A stretch of 64,000 nucleotides of DNA, taken from the NCBI RefSeq assembly GCF_001194135.2, contig NC_068989.1:52886127-52950126 (forward strand), given 5' to 3'. Origin of the DNA: Octopus bimaculoides. Lineage: Eukaryota. Below the pieces are notes generated by a model. That model had not been told where the DNA came from. It did no database searches and was given only the letters and a program-made list of their open reading frames with translations. Both the position numbers and the translations under genes were made by a program. Shown here piece by piece: positions 48,660 through 52,620 of this stretch (the stretch's first letter is position 1; every line of letters starts with the position of its first letter).

Positions 48660-48720
48660 ATATACATACATACATACATACATACATACATACATACATA
48701 CATACATACATACATACATA
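48660..48720. repeat. (CATA)n 5' flank of LINE C
   Basis: Direct sequence. Confidence 0.95.
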
Positions 48721-51700
48721 ACTCGAAGCGACAAGTCGCGTATTTGGAGTGGAAAACTATTTATCAAAAATACGATGAATACTATCTCCAACTTTGGAGC
48801 CACAACTATCAGCCTCGTTAAATAACTAGTTAATCTTCAGATGAATTAATTGAGGGAGCCTTTTATTCATGATTGTAAGGATGTTCGACTGAAATTTGAA
48901 ATTAGCATGCAGTGAGTTACTATAAACGACATGGCTGGGCACAACATCAACAACAACACAACCGAGGAACAGAAGGAAAACAATAGCTAAACAGGTAAAA
49001 AATTCTTTCTAGCTGTAGTTATAGAATAATCAGATATTACAAAACTCATTTCTCTTGGAGTTATGAATTGAATACTGACCTGTTTAACTGCTAAAAAAAA
49101 GAGAAACAAAGCTATGCTGTTGGCTATGTGAATCGATTGGAATCATATTGGGACGATCTGCATCCAGAATTAAATCATTTTACTGCGAAGCAACTACGCC
49201 AACCAGCAACATTTGTAGAACATAGAAAGAAGGTTAGTAACTGCAACTTTATTAAAAAATCGAAAATTAACCTTCTTCCCAGCTTTATAAACAAAAACGA
49301 AAACGTGAATGATGTTAGGCCACCAGCTGGTTTCGCAGCTAACGACATTCCTACAGATTCTATAGTGCCTGCCAGCTAAAGTATATTACTGACTCAAGTA
49401 ACTGACCACTGTCCCCCTACTACGACTGTGGTAAATAGCAAGCACATCCGCAATGGTTATTGCAGTAGTAGTGATAGTCAGGATTATATACGGGTGAAAT
49501 GTGCCCTTACTGAAATTAGTAAAGCCAAAAATAATTTTGGCTGCGAAATACTCTCTACCAAAGTAAGTAAAAAACCACCAGATACGGTATTAAAAGTTGT
49601 TAACGAAATTGGTGAGGAGTATTTACAGCAGTGTGATGAACCCAGATTCTGGCAGATTAACGCATGTCTATATGTTCTAGCGGTTACTATTGCAAAGCAG
49701 TACATGAATGACATTCAAAAAGTAAACAAAACCGAAACAACAAAGAAAGTACCGTCATGGGTTTTGAAGACAGAGAAAAAAGATAGCTGGTTTACGGAAG
49801 ACCATCAGTTATGTAATGATACTTATTGCATGCAAACAAGCAAATCACTATACGTCCCACCAACAGAAAGTAAAGAAGGAGATAGAAATGATGTCTGGAG
49901 ACACCAAACAGAGGACATTCACTTGCAAACTGATTACCATCAAGCAGAAGCTAAAAGCCGTCAGTGAAAACTCCGACATCAGAACAGAATAACCGAGAGA
50001 ACAATAAACAAAAAATTTAACCGCAACCAGGCAGCAGTATACAGAAACATGAGAGGAGAAGCAATGAACATCACAGAAGTTCCTTCATGAGAAGACATAG
50101 ACACCTGAAGGAAGAAAATTTGGAATAAAGAGGAGTTTAACCAAGACGCTCTGTGGCTGAAAGAAATCCGGAGAAGTTATTGCTCCTGCGTTATACACAA
50201 ACATACAACATTGATGGTGAAACTCTTGCAACTGTGATCCAAAAACTCCAGGATGGAAAAACACCTGGAAGAGACTTGATTGTTGGATATTGGTACAAGA
50301 AGCTAACATTCTACTAACCATATCTTATCAATCTGTACCAGCAAGCTCTCAATGAGAACAGTAGCATACCACACTGGTTAGCTCTGGCAGAGACAAAATT
50401 GAATCCCAAATGCAGAACCATCTACATGGCAAAACCTACCGGCCAATTGCATGTCAGAACTTAATGTATAAGATATATATAGCATGCTTAAACCTCCTCC
50501 TCCAGGACCATTATGAAACCAATGACATCAACACAGTAGAACAAGAAGCTGGGAAGAAGGGAGTCTGGCGATGTGCCGAGCAACTATTAATGAATAAAAC
50601 TGTGATGTCAGAGGGGCGAGAACATAGGAGGAAACTAGTTTCAATGTGGCTTGACTACAAGAAAGCTTTTGCCTCTGTCCACCACTCATGGATGCTAGAA
50701 GCCCTTCAACTTGCTAAAGTTCCAGTGAGCATAGTCAAATCCATAGCTGACCTAACTTCATCGTGGGGCACCATCCTGAAATTAAGCACAAAGAGTGACT
50801 CTGTTATCACTAATAGAATACAGTATCGCAAAGGCATATTCTAAGGGGACAACCTCTCTGTGATGTTGTTTATACTTTCTGTAAACCCATTGTCATTCAT
50901 GTTAAAAAGAAGTCTGAATGTTATATAACTGATTCACAAGGAAACAGAAATACCAAAATTACACAGTTTCTTTGTGGATGACTTGAAATTTTATGCAAAG
51001 AATATCCATGAGGTGAAAAAGAATCTTGAGCTAGTTATAACATTCTCAAAGGATGTAGGGTTAGAGTTTGGCCAGGACAAACGTTATGTGGTTGTGAAAA
51101 GGGTCAAAATTATAAACCAGACTAGCAACATCATCAATGATTTGATTGTTTCCCCTATATCTGATGAGGAATGTTACAAGTATCTAAGGATATATGAAAA
51201 TAGATCTTTCAATGACGCCTGTAACAAAACACGTGTCAACAAAGAATATTAGAGCTGAACAAAGAAAATCTGGACCTCAGAACTCTCTGCATTCGATAAA
51301 ACAGTGGCCCACAATTTGTTTGCAGTGCCAGTACTCATACCAACATTTGGGCTACTTGATTGGACGCTTGATGAGATCCGAACCATTGATATGAAAACCT
51401 GGAAAATACTAACACGCACACATAATTTCCACATCAACAGTGACGTAGACAGCCTCCACCTAAAACGAAAACAAGGCGGCAGAGGCTTAACATCGATCCG
51501 AACTGCTTTGAATGTCGTATCATATCCCAAATGTTGAAGTGCATCCCTTGACCAAGTTTGCATACATGAGGCTGATAACATCATAAGACTTGGAAGGCAG
51601 CTCCTTGAGCAACACTCTTTGTCTGAGAACCTAGAGTACCTGACCAAAGACGTCGCACGACTCTTCCGCAAAGTTTCATTCGATGAAAGAATGGGCCTAT

Positions 51701-52477
51701 ATGAACAAAAGATAATGCATAGATATGTTAGTAGAAAACTCCGAGGTGATAGTAACATTGATCATCAAAGTAGTTTATAATGGACCAATAGTTGGATTAC
51801 TACCTCCCATTTTGAAAGGAATGCGTTTGCAATCTAAGAACAGGAAATATCAACCAAGTACCTGATGTACAAAAGGGACAACATAAGCAGTTGTCTGAAA
51901 ATGTCATCACGATATTATCTACCAATGAGACATGACGTTGTAACTACGACACTCTATAATAAAATCGGTCGGAAGGATAATCTCGAGGACAAAGAAATAA
52001 GAACCTACACTATGGTAGAAGCCATAACCTCTCATAATAAAAAGGAGTACTGGTGGAATGTCCAAGTGTATTCCTCAGTAAAATGTGAGCACAACAGAGC
52101 TGATAAAATGATTTGGGATAGAGAAGAGAAATTGTATGCAGTTGTGGAAATTAGCTGCCCAACGGATGTTAACATAAGGCTGAAGATCAGTGAAAAAGTG
52201 AATACCTACGCTGAACTATTGAGAAATTTGCAGTTAATCTATACAGATTACAAGTTCAGGTCTATACCTGTAATTATTGGAGCCCTGGGATGTGTTACAC
52301 ACCGCCTAAATACCAATCTTGAGAAATTAGGCTTCTCAAAACTAGAAAGGAGAAAGTTAATTCGAAGACTACAGATCCAATCCATCACGGGAACTGTAAA
52401 ATTCTGTAAAACCTTCCCGAAGTTTATCATTTAAATATATATGAGCATGTCTAGATATGCAACTATATACATGAGAA
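48721..52477 (+). mobile_element. Near-full-length RLE-type (R4-like) LINE, family C; pseudogenised
   Basis: TYRPIACQNLMYK, AEQLLMNK, WLDYKKAFASVHHSW, FVDDLKFY, KRKQGGRGL, RHDVV, NRAD, VEISCP, IPVIIGALG. Stop at 52432-34, 43-nt 3' UTR; the CxxC-H part of the zinc knuckle is deleted. Confidence 0.93.
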
Positions 52478-52620
52478 TACATACATACATACAGGCATAC
52501 ATACATACATACATGCATACATACATACATACATGCATACAAACAAACATACATACATACATACGTACGTACGTACGTACATACATACATACATACATAC
52601 ATACATACATACATACATAC
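52478..52620. repeat. (CATA)n 3' flank/tail of LINE C
   Basis: Direct sequence. Confidence 0.95.

Follow-up and report, generated by a model that had tools for sequence, protein, structure and literature searches.

Site-specific LINEs that encode a restriction-like endonuclease (RLE), R2 above all, are being developed as tools for inserting genes and are the main models for how a mobile element chooses a harmless landing site. Dong (from Bombyx mori, with DongAg and DongBg), a member of the R4/Dong clade, has a single ORF with a reverse transcriptase (RT), a CCHC knuckle, a C-terminal RLE and no N-terminal zinc fingers. It inserts exactly, and in one orientation, into (TAA)n microsatellites (PMC3812793, PMC7998251), with tandem copies sharing one array. 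R4, from Ascaris lumbricoides and other nematodes, has the same protein layout but inserts at one site in 28S rDNA. Both carry an HDV-like self-cleaving ribozyme at the 5' end, which in Dong releases the RNA (PMC3774820), and a diverged Myb/SANT-like N-terminal domain has been described in this clade (PMC7998251). The microsatellite-specific LINEs listed by Grandi & An 2013 (PMC3812793) target (TAA)n, (AC)n, (TC)n, (TTC)n and (ACAY)n, the last being the target of Waldo (WaldoAg1/2, WaldoFs1), and Kojima & Jurka 2015 (PMC4640811) add Togen, a NeSL-related RLE element of fish specific for (TG)n. In these lists, the RLE-type elements are Dong and Togen only. HERO families of the leech, which are RLE LINEs with no recognised N-terminal motif, are also reported to include microsatellite-specific members (Kapitonov & Jurka 2014, Repbase Reports, cited in PMC4640811).

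Here we examined a LINE copy found in a 64,000-nt stretch of Octopus bimaculoides DNA (assembly GCF_001194135.2, contig NC_068989.1, positions 52,886,127 to 52,950,126; hereafter, the window). An earlier note, made from the sequence alone, had proposed that this copy is a near-full-length R4-like LINE lying between (CATA)n arrays and that its endonuclease might have a new target specificity.

A decayed RLE LINE lies between two (CATA)n arrays

The element occupies positions 48721-52476 of the plus strand (3,756 bp). Tandem Repeats Finder (TRF) reports (ATAC)14.8 at 48662-48720 with 100% matches and (ATAC)36 at 52477-52620 with 91% matches, both arrays reading (CATA)n on the sense strand of the element. 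The sequence reads ...CATACATACATA|ACTCGAAGCGAC at 48720/21 and ...ACATGAGA|ATACATACATAC at 52476/77. Thus, the junctions given in the earlier note are right to within 1 nt, and its observation is confirmed.

The interval contains a single decayed ORF. A Pfam scan identified RVT_1 (E 5.5e-16), whereas hits of the C-terminal translation to RGS_DHEX and HSDR_N_2 were below threshold and were disregarded. A tblastn search with the intact relative P0003 (1151 aa) covers amino acids 6-1149 in frames 2, 2, 1, 0. The 5'UTR (48721-49016, about 296 nt; ORF start inferred from the alignment of P0003 aa 6 at 49017) is followed by the remnant of a conserved N-terminal domain (49017-49235; ..THFSWSYELNTDLF..GYVNRLESYWDDLHPELNHFTAKQLRQ..; 51% identity to P0003 aa 6-79). 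The RT domain (YRPIAC .. FFVDDLK) spans 50204-51240, with a frameshift near 50430. At 51880-51936, a 21-codon in-frame deletion removes C-X2-C-X8-H from the CCHC zinc knuckle and only the last Cys remains. The RLE core lies at 52096-52209 (HNRAD..VVEISCPTDVN..SEKVNTY), with RAD where relatives have RPD or KPD, followed by E, D-N, K and Y. The stop codon at 52432-52434 leaves a 3'UTR of only 42 nt (52435-52476). With at least 12 internal stops, 2 frameshifts, three of the four zinc-knuckle ligands deleted and the 3'UTR hairpin of its relatives missing, this copy is dead. The lead towards site-specific insertion tools raised in the earlier note would therefore lie with intact relatives.

A second copy lies on the minus strand at 6703-7051. 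In a blastn comparison, window positions 7020-6703 match element positions 30-402 at 66% identity. The 5' end of this copy (...ACATACATACA|CACGAAACGACAAGG at about 7051) falls within 1-2 nt of the 5' end of the main copy, as the earlier note had pointed out. It is only a 350-bp fragment holding the 5'UTR and about 30 codons, which tblastn aligns to the N-termini of relatives. It is preceded directly by (CATA)n at 7054-7100 (in the sense orientation on the minus strand) and followed directly by another (CATA)n array at 6702-6574. An isolated 50-codon fragment from the C-terminal end of a third copy of the same family (..IIGG..LQI*SIS..KMSKTF) was found on the minus strand at 7718-7867 (tblastn, 48% identity to aa 1092-1141 of the relative P0004).

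The window is very rich in microsatellites (96 TRF rows), with fourteen CATA/TATG arrays in 58 kb. However, same-strand (CATA)n arrays (8 in total) cover 0.55% of the non-N window, and the probability that a random point falls within 2 nt of the 3' edge of an array is about 7e-4. Since four junctions in the window and more than 20 in relatives (below) fall in the repeat, in one orientation, chance juxtaposition is effectively excluded. The suggestion in the earlier note that the element may help explain the local abundance of (CATA)n is not supported: most arrays in the window have no LINE remnant beside them, and tblastn found none next to the arrays at 30437, 39584, 45907-46061 and 53457-54092.

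Relatives lie in the same repeat

To determine whether the association is a property of the lineage, relatives (35-53% amino acid identity, unrelated UTRs) were fetched from public assemblies and their flanks examined. The earlier note would have been contradicted had most 5' junctions been in non-repeat DNA; instead, 11 of 11 informative 5' junctions lie in (CATA)n, as do 10-11 of 11 visible 3' junctions, always in the sense orientation. The (CATA)n association is a property of the lineage, not chance. The loci (numbered L) are L001, L002, L003, L005 and L006-8; L009, from the genome of the octopod Argonauta hians; L011, at 35% identity; L016 and L017, with arrays on both sides; and L051 and L052. 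Most relatives come from metagenome assemblies of unknown host, and contigs often end inside the repeat. There is no fixed junction register across (CATA)n families, as CATA, ACAT and ATAC phases all occur at the 3' side.

Other loci showed different targets. (CTTA)n is present on both sides of L013-L015 and L018-L022, families that do share one junction phase. (AAT)n flanks L012, L010 and L025, as well as two Dong-like copies in the window itself (70-2857 and 8065-8766). L030 and L031 are inserted in 28S rDNA at an R4-like site. These associations argue against passive accumulation, in which copies insert anywhere but survive preferentially in or near (CATA)n, as was proposed for Drosophila Waldo-A and Waldo-B near CA repeats (a case cited in PMC3812793). 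Although the abundance of microsatellites in the window could favor such a scenario, junctions are exact at both ends rather than merely nearby, orientation is the same in every locus, the same motif recurs in hosts as different as an octopod and those of several metagenomes, and sister lineages show equally exact association with a different motif. We consider this explanation very unlikely.

A further possibility is that the element has no target preference and carries its own repeats: transcripts would start a few units upstream in the 5' repeat and end in a (CATA)n tail, so that every new copy would bring repeats at both ends, later expanded by slippage. Many LINEs carry microsatellite 3' tails, the perfect 5' array of the window copy is consistent with recent slippage, and the 5' box described below predicts a start site inside the flanking repeat. 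However, 5' arrays run to 15-43 or more units, while the predicted transcript would carry only 2-4. No target-site duplication is visible outside the arrays where both outer flanks are seen (the window, L009 and L011). Furthermore, L009 lies in a compound (CA)n(CATA)n tract that continues on both sides, L051 lies next to a compound (CATA)n(CTTA)14(CATA)n array, and tandem copies share a single array in L013. Self-carried repeats thus appear unlikely to account for the data, although no empty (pre-insertion) site was seen and insertion into a pre-existing array is inferred from flanks only, as it was for Dong.

The tetranucleotide users form a separate clade

In a neighbour-joining tree of the RT region, the users of tetranucleotide repeats form a clade with 100/100 bootstrap support, separate from the Dong-like clade (84/100) and the R4-like pair (100/100). 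When the tree was rooted with an R2 sequence, support for the tetranucleotide clade was again 100/100, but the clade was sister to the R4-like and Dong-like elements together, rather than nested inside them (60/100). The two groups, used as proxies for the named R4 and Dong references, were identified by their targets (28S at an R4-like site and (TAA)n, respectively). "R4-like" is a fair description of the element, but membership of the named R4 clade is not shown. Among the 60 best protein hits, Dong-like insect proteins were found but no fish, urchin or lancelet protein, which bears indirectly on a relationship to HERO.

The single ORF, with a small N-terminal three-helix domain, an RT, a CCHC knuckle and a C-terminal RLE of the PD-(D/E)XK type, has the layout of the R2/R4/Dong group. 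The motifs YRPIA, VDDLK, C-X2-C-X8-H-X4-C and PD..E/D..D-N..K..Y are invariant in 14 relatives. The family matches solved R2 proteins with an RT E-value of 1e-28, the similarity being limited to the RT and the CCHC, which aligns with that of R2. Intact relatives have no apurinic/apyrimidinic-type endonuclease (APE) domain in Pfam scans, and no zinc-finger motif is present in the N-termini. The N-terminal box is conserved and aligns with Dong-like proteins; an AlphaFold model of the P0003 domain predicts three helices (pLDDT 82), which gave no significant Foldseek match against the PDB (best E 1.3) and no Pfam Myb hit.

A 3' hairpin and a 5' box in the relatives

In intact relatives, a conserved 3'UTR hairpin, CCUU-6 bp-UUGUU-6 bp-CGG, lies 17-40 nt before the 3' junction. 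In the alignment, 54 of 54 cells are paired and all 6 pairs show compensatory changes; none of 500 shuffles was as good and slid controls were at most 43% paired. A covariance model (R1) found the hairpin in Argonauta, outside the training set, at E 2e-4. It gave no hit in the window copy, in the basal subclade (L051, L052) or in Dong-like loci.

A second feature is a box near the 5' end that matches the LINE downstream promoter element (DPE) consensus RGWCGTKY (PMC1636488). The window copy carries AGTCGCGT, a 7/8 match, at 48734-48741, 14 nt inside the element. Relatives carry GGACGTGT (8/8) at nt 18-32. The match is 8/8 in four independent families and 7/8 in three more, against a background of 1.7e-4 per position. 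The spacing of the box would place the transcription start on a CA step 8-16 nt upstream, in the flanking repeat. Phase offers only weak support for this start site: 5 of 7 families share a phase (P about 0.013 before correcting for the choice of phase).

An HDV-like ribozyme, expected from Dong and R4, was searched for at the 5' end. Rfam searches at E up to 5 returned only sub-threshold microRNA hits on the microsatellite itself, and a P1-P2-P3-P1.1-P4 descriptor returned only AU-rich matches that are inconsistent between families, although divergent ribozymes can escape both methods. As controls, the descriptor located a ribozyme exactly at the 5' junction of the Dong-like locus L010, and Rfam gave a weak HDV hit in the R4-like L030. 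A small 5' hairpin that seemed present in most families proved no better than chance when the first 30 nt were folded against shuffles.

Discussion

The most likely explanation for these data, in which we have good confidence, is that the region is an old, inactivated insertion of a non-LTR retrotransposon from a clade that integrates specifically into (CATA)n microsatellites. The interpretation of the earlier note is thus supported, with the reservations given above on clade membership, register and (CATA)n abundance, and with the further one that nothing shows the endonuclease to set the specificity. In the papers examined, in a search that did not extend to Repbase or Dfam, we found no description of a (CATA)n- or (ACAT)n-specific RLE LINE. 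While the analysis directly establishes the protein architecture, the flanks in this copy and in relatives, the covariation in the hairpin, the presence of the box and the phylogenetic grouping, the nicking site, the determinant of specificity, the use of the promoter and the role of the hairpin are all inferred. By analogy with R2 and Dong, the protein would bind its own RNA, nick one strand of the (CATA)n array and copy the RNA from that nick by target-primed reverse transcription. Repeat units carried at the RNA ends would pair with the target, so that both junctions fall inside the repeat. In this view, the 3' hairpin is the likely recognition element for the RT, and the DPE-like box, resembling that of insect LINE internal promoters, would direct transcription to start within the target repeat.

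We also envisaged that specificity is real but comes mainly from RNA-DNA pairing, with repeat units at the 3' end of the element RNA annealing to the nicked target and the endonuclease needing only a short shared motif such as TA/TAC. The three target types in the wider group (CATA, CTTA and TAA) differ by single bases and share TA(C). (CTTA)n users appear in at least two places within the (CATA)n clade, as L019 and the relative P0027 (100/100) are separate from L013-L018, although the sample of (CTTA)n elements is small and comes from one study (ERZ17400xx). Only three alignment columns have disjoint residue sets between (CATA)n and (CTTA)n elements and none is clean; thus, no protein position tracks the target. 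Compound CATA/CTTA arrays also exist. Nothing speaks directly against this idea, but R2-group proteins recognise their DNA target through protein domains, and Schön et al. 2021 (PMC7998251) propose the N-terminal Myb-like domain as the determinant in R4/Dong. We regard it as possible but doubtful.

Equally tentative is a broader reading, in which a widespread, so far undescribed sister clade of R4/Dong homes to tetranucleotide microsatellites and has shifted its target by a single base at least once, between (CATA)n and (CTTA)n. Such a clade would have replaced the ancestral 5' ribozyme and co-transcription strategy with an initiator/DPE-type Pol II promoter whose initiator is supplied by the target repeat itself, and would recognise its RNA through a clade-specific 3' hairpin. 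If the target is set largely by repeat units at the RNA ends, this would be a naturally retargetable RLE retrotransposon. The apparent change from ribozyme processing to an internal promoter would, if confirmed, be a second, independent change in lifestyle within one group.

A well-populated clade with intact members, targeting (CATA)n or (CTTA)n and sitting next to (TAA)n and 28S users, adds natural variants for working out what sets the target. For annotation of this genome, the practical result is that both copies are dead relics and that some (CATA)n arrays are split halves of one target array.

Compared with described systems, the element is, like Togen, an RLE LINE associated with a microsatellite, but Togen belongs to a different clade and its target is a dinucleotide. 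The (ACAY)n target of Waldo includes (ACAT)n, which is the same repeat as (CATA)n; however, Waldo has an N-terminal APE-type endonuclease and belongs to the unrelated R1 clade, and the shared target is convergent. R2 differs in its N-terminal zinc finger(s) plus Myb and in its insertion at the R2 site of 28S rDNA. HERO groups with NeSL in published trees (PMC2790886), and the nearest relatives found here are Dong- and R4-like; the papers examined do not state the motif targeted by the leech HERO families, and identity with these families cannot be excluded. R4 shares the protein layout, and the R4-like elements L030 and L031 are the next relatives, at 25-26% identity, but R4 inserts in 28S rDNA and carries a 5' ribozyme. 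Dong-like elements are the nearest sequence relatives found and have in common with this lineage the single ORF, the absence of N-terminal zinc fingers, the conserved N-terminal helical box and exact insertion into a microsatellite in one orientation, with tandem copies sharing one array. They differ in that a 5' ribozyme, carried by Dong, was not detected here, in that this clade has a DPE-like box and its own 3' hairpin, and in the target itself, (TAA)n for Dong and the tetranucleotide (CATA)n for the element described here, the (TAA)n users forming a separate clade in the tree.

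Structure and flanks of the element

The 3,756-bp element lies between two (CATA)n arrays, one spanning 48662-48720 and made of 14.8 perfect units, the other spanning 52477-52620 and made of 36 units with 91% matches. The interval between them begins ...CATACATA|ACTCGAAGCGAC and ends ...ACATGAGA|ATACATAC. It encodes a reverse transcriptase (RT; Pfam RVT_1, E 5.5e-16) and, near its C-terminus, the pattern of a restriction-like endonuclease (RLE), HNRAD..VVEISCPTDVN..SEKVNTY. When an intact relative (P0003, 1151 aa) was used as a tblastn query, residues 6-79, 161-369, 377-453 and 452-1149 aligned in frames 2, 2, 1 and 0, respectively. 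The copy therefore spans almost the whole ORF but is broken by at least 12 internal stops and two frameshifts, by a 21-codon deletion that removes three of the four ligands of the CCHC knuckle, and by the presence of RAD in place of the invariant (R/K)PD.

Only one other copy was detected at the DNA level in the window (7020-6703, minus strand), with 66% identity to element positions 30-402. As the earlier note had stated, the 5' end of this copy abuts (CATA)n within 1-2 nt of the same point. It is, however, a fragment of about 350 bp holding only the 5' end (5'UTR plus about 30 codons), and its 3' side runs straight into another (CATA)n array, so that it is bracketed by the repeat on both sides (6574-7100, minus strand). 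Ordinary LINE truncation removes 5' ends, not 3' ends, and no internal CATA-like sequence explains a deletion at this point. A 50-codon fragment from the C-terminal end of a third copy of the family lies at 7867-7718. It is followed by about 600 bp that read as the reverse complement of the C-terminal part of an unrelated LINE, so that this segment (7101-7867, minus strand) looks like a nested insertion next to the (CATA)n at 7054-7100.

Same-strand (CATA)n covers 0.55% of the window, and a random junction would fall at an array edge with a probability of about 7e-4. The window has 36% G+C, 15 N gaps (5,885 N) and 96 tandem repeat entries in the TRF output. Further CATA/TATG-type arrays in both orientations are clustered just downstream of the element (window 52722-54092: 52722-52758, 52819-52874, 53457-53501 and 54005-54092), with no LINE remnant detectable among them; a similar cluster surrounds the element at L011, one of the relatives examined below. 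Rfam returned low E-values for microRNA families (mir-297, mir-3149, mir-1277, mir-466) on the (TATG)n strand of the microsatellite at 48647-48719 and 52434-52634 (minus strand). All were far below gathering scores and represent a low-complexity artefact, not a gene.

Flanks of related elements

A protein search gave 60 hits, the best of which have 44-46% identity and are 1130-1160 aa long. We retrieved the DNA for part of these and scanned metagenome contigs with a family alignment. In the lineage that contains the window copy, every locus (L numbers) whose end is visible shows the same repeat on the sense strand. (CATA)n is present on both sides in L002, L005, L006-L008, L011 (35% identity), L016 and L017. 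It is present on the 5' side in L001, where the 3' side is not visible, in L009, from the genome of the octopod Argonauta hians, where the 3' side is decayed, and in L051, where the 3' side is uncertain. It is present on the 3' side in L003 and L052, where the 5' side is not visible. Counting the two window copies, (CATA)n is found at 11 of 11 informative 5' junctions and at 10-11 of 11 informative 3' junctions. The untranslated regions of these families are unrelated in sequence, so they are independent families and not copies of one locus. The earlier note had proposed that its reading would fail if most 5' junctions lay in non-repeat DNA; the counts do not refute it. Chance juxtaposition and passive accumulation of copies in the repeat are both effectively excluded. 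Several relatives (P0002, P0019, P0026, P0024 and P0029) stand for protein clusters of 28-389 members at 90% identity or more, on megabase-scale ENA contigs, and many members are full length (for example, 1197 aa and 1153 aa). Some hosts therefore carry recently active, high-copy families of this clade.

Other lineages produced a different pattern. Eight loci from one study (L013-L015 and L018-L022; 39-53% identity to P0003) are flanked in the same exact way by (CTTA)n instead. In L013, a 3' hairpin belonging to an upstream copy precedes the (CTTA)19 in front of the element (332-477), indicating that head-to-tail tandem copies share one microsatellite. More distant relatives end in (AAT)n = (TAA)n. 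These are L012, L025 (both sides) and L010 from Helicoverpa armigera, where tandem copies are separated by the repeat: an upstream Dong-like 3' end is followed by the A-rich/(TAA)n tract and then by the next copy (1200-2330). The window itself holds two decayed Dong-like RLE LINE copies on the plus strand (70-2857 and 8065-8766), which best match the relatives P0047 and P0053. The first, at about 70-2776, ends directly in (AAT)27 (2777-2857; ...GACTACTG|(AAT)27 at 2777); the second, at 8065-8719, ends in (AAT)n (8720-8766; ...AAGAATGC|(AAT)n at 8720). The two copies serve as an internal control, since they show that a different microsatellite-specific lineage in the same genome uses a different repeat. 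The most distant relatives, L030 and L031 (25-26% identity), lie in 28S rDNA. L031 is flanked by LSU rRNA on both sides, and the junction (...GCGCATGA|) falls between the R2 and R1 sites, as for R4. L030 and L031 are probably R4-type elements.

Phylogeny

A neighbour-joining tree of the RT region gave three groups: the tetranucleotide clade (bootstrap 100/100), the (TAA)n clade (84/100) and the 28S pair (100/100). When the tree was rooted with an R2 sequence, taken from the alignment with R2 proteins, support for the tetranucleotide clade was again 100/100, and the clade appeared as sister to the R4-like plus Dong-like groups together, albeit weakly (60/100). Inside the clade, (CTTA)n users are not clearly monophyletic, since L019 groups with the relative P0027 (100/100), apart from L013-L018. 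The target therefore probably changed more than once, or reverted. The two motifs also occur together in one tract, as L051, a (CATA)n-lineage element, has a compound (CATA)n(CTTA)14(CATA)n array directly on its 5' side (2275-2460).

Conserved protein motifs

Fourteen full-length relatives share a set of invariant motifs: YRPIA and VDDLK in the RT; C-X2-C-X8-H-X4-C; PD .. E/D .. D-N .. K .. Y in the endonuclease; and an N-terminal box, NRDY..W..LN.D.Y..GY..R.K.LWD..HPE...K.L..QA. The RT matches solved R2 proteins at 1e-28 and the CCHC aligns with theirs. The N-terminal box aligns with that of the Dong-like proteins and is modelled by AlphaFold as a three-helix bundle (pLDDT 82). A diverged Myb/SANT-like domain was reported at this place in R4/Dong elements using HHpred (Schön et al. 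2021, PMC7998251); here, comparison of the model with PDB structures gave no significant fold match and a Pfam scan gave no hit, so that this identity was not confirmed. No alignment column cleanly separates (CATA)n from (CTTA)n elements.

RNA and DNA signals at the element ends

Nine families from both the (CATA)n and (CTTA)n lineages carry, in the 3' region, a 6-bp stem with a 5-nt loop, mostly UUGUU, flanked by CCUU and CGG. This hairpin lies 27-40 nt upstream of the 3' junction in those families and 17 nt upstream in Argonauta. All 54 cells are paired and all six pairs show compensatory double changes; none of 500 shuffles reaches this, and slid controls pair at 43% or less. A covariance model built from the hairpin (R1) finds it in the Argonauta element, which was not in the training set (E 2e-4), and also finds the one just upstream of the 5' repeat of L013. 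In contrast, the model finds none in Dong-like loci, none in the basal L051/L052 subclade and none in the window copy. The 3'UTR of the latter is only 42 nt, so the hairpin was probably deleted.

At the other end, the sequence GGACGTGT lies 18-32 nt inside the element in four independent families (L005/L017, L006, L011 and L016), and versions matching at 7 of 8 positions are found in L014, L015 and the window copy (AGTCGCGT, 48734-48741). The background rate of an 8/8 match is 1.7e-4 per position. The box equals the extended downstream-promoter-element consensus, A/G-G-A/T-C-G-T-G/T-C/T, found at about +29 to +36 of the Drosophila LINEs Doc, F, G, I and jockey (PMC1636488; RGWCGTG in PMC8867553). 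If the first base of the box is taken as +28, the predicted start site falls on the A of TAC-A-TAC, 8-16 nt upstream in the flanking repeat, for L001, L006, L011, L016 and L051, and on CTT-A-CTT for L014 and L015. This agreement in phase (5 of 7) is only suggestive.

Dong and R4 are processed by HDV-like ribozymes at their 5' ends (Eickbush et al. 2013, PMC3774820). Neither Rfam nor a descriptor of our own detected such a ribozyme in the tetranucleotide clade. The same descriptor finds a good candidate exactly at the 5' junction of the Helicoverpa Dong-like element L010 (2324-2480; P1 CCCCCC/GGGGGG, P3 ACC/GGU, L3 UUGACGU, P2 UGGGGCC/GGUCCCA), and Rfam gives a weak HDV hit at the 5' end of R4-like L030 (RF02682, E 0.09). 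Although it rests on a negative result, this pattern fits a change from co-transcription with self-cleavage to an internal promoter.

Inferred mode of integration

The most likely mechanism is that the element family integrates by target-primed reverse transcription into (CATA)n, in one orientation. The architecture, the flanks, the hairpin, the box and the clade structure come directly from the analysis. On the other hand, it is by inference that the RLE would nick within the repeat, that the hairpin would be the recognition site of the RT, and that transcripts would begin in the upstream repeat and carry repeat units that help both junctions form by pairing. The component that sets the target is likewise a matter of inference, and specificity may be guided by RNA or by protein. 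An alternative in which the elements simply carry their own terminal repeats is unlikely, being disfavoured by the long 5' arrays, the absence of outer target-site duplications, and compound tracts that continue on both sides. Altogether, the insertion described in the earlier note is real, and its reading as a candidate retrotransposon targeting a tetranucleotide microsatellite is essentially right. The window copy itself is an ordinary dead relic; the interest lies in the clade it reveals.

Comparison with known microsatellite-targeting LINEs

Microsatellite-targeting LINEs listed by Grandi & An 2013 (PMC3812793) comprise Waldo (ACAY)n, Mino (AC)n, Kibi (TC)n, Koshi (TTC)n and Dong (TAA)n. 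Kojima & Jurka 2015 (PMC4640811) add Togen (TG)n and note that some leech HERO families are microsatellite-specific, without naming the motif in the text consulted. No RLE element with a (CATA)n target was found in a search of the literature, although prior cataloguing in Repbase or Dfam cannot be excluded. Schön et al. 2021 state that the Dong target is (TAA)n in most insects, molluscs and cnidarians. A (CATA)n target is thus known only for the unrelated, APE-bearing Waldo. The present lineage differs from Dong in its target, and from Waldo in its endonuclease.
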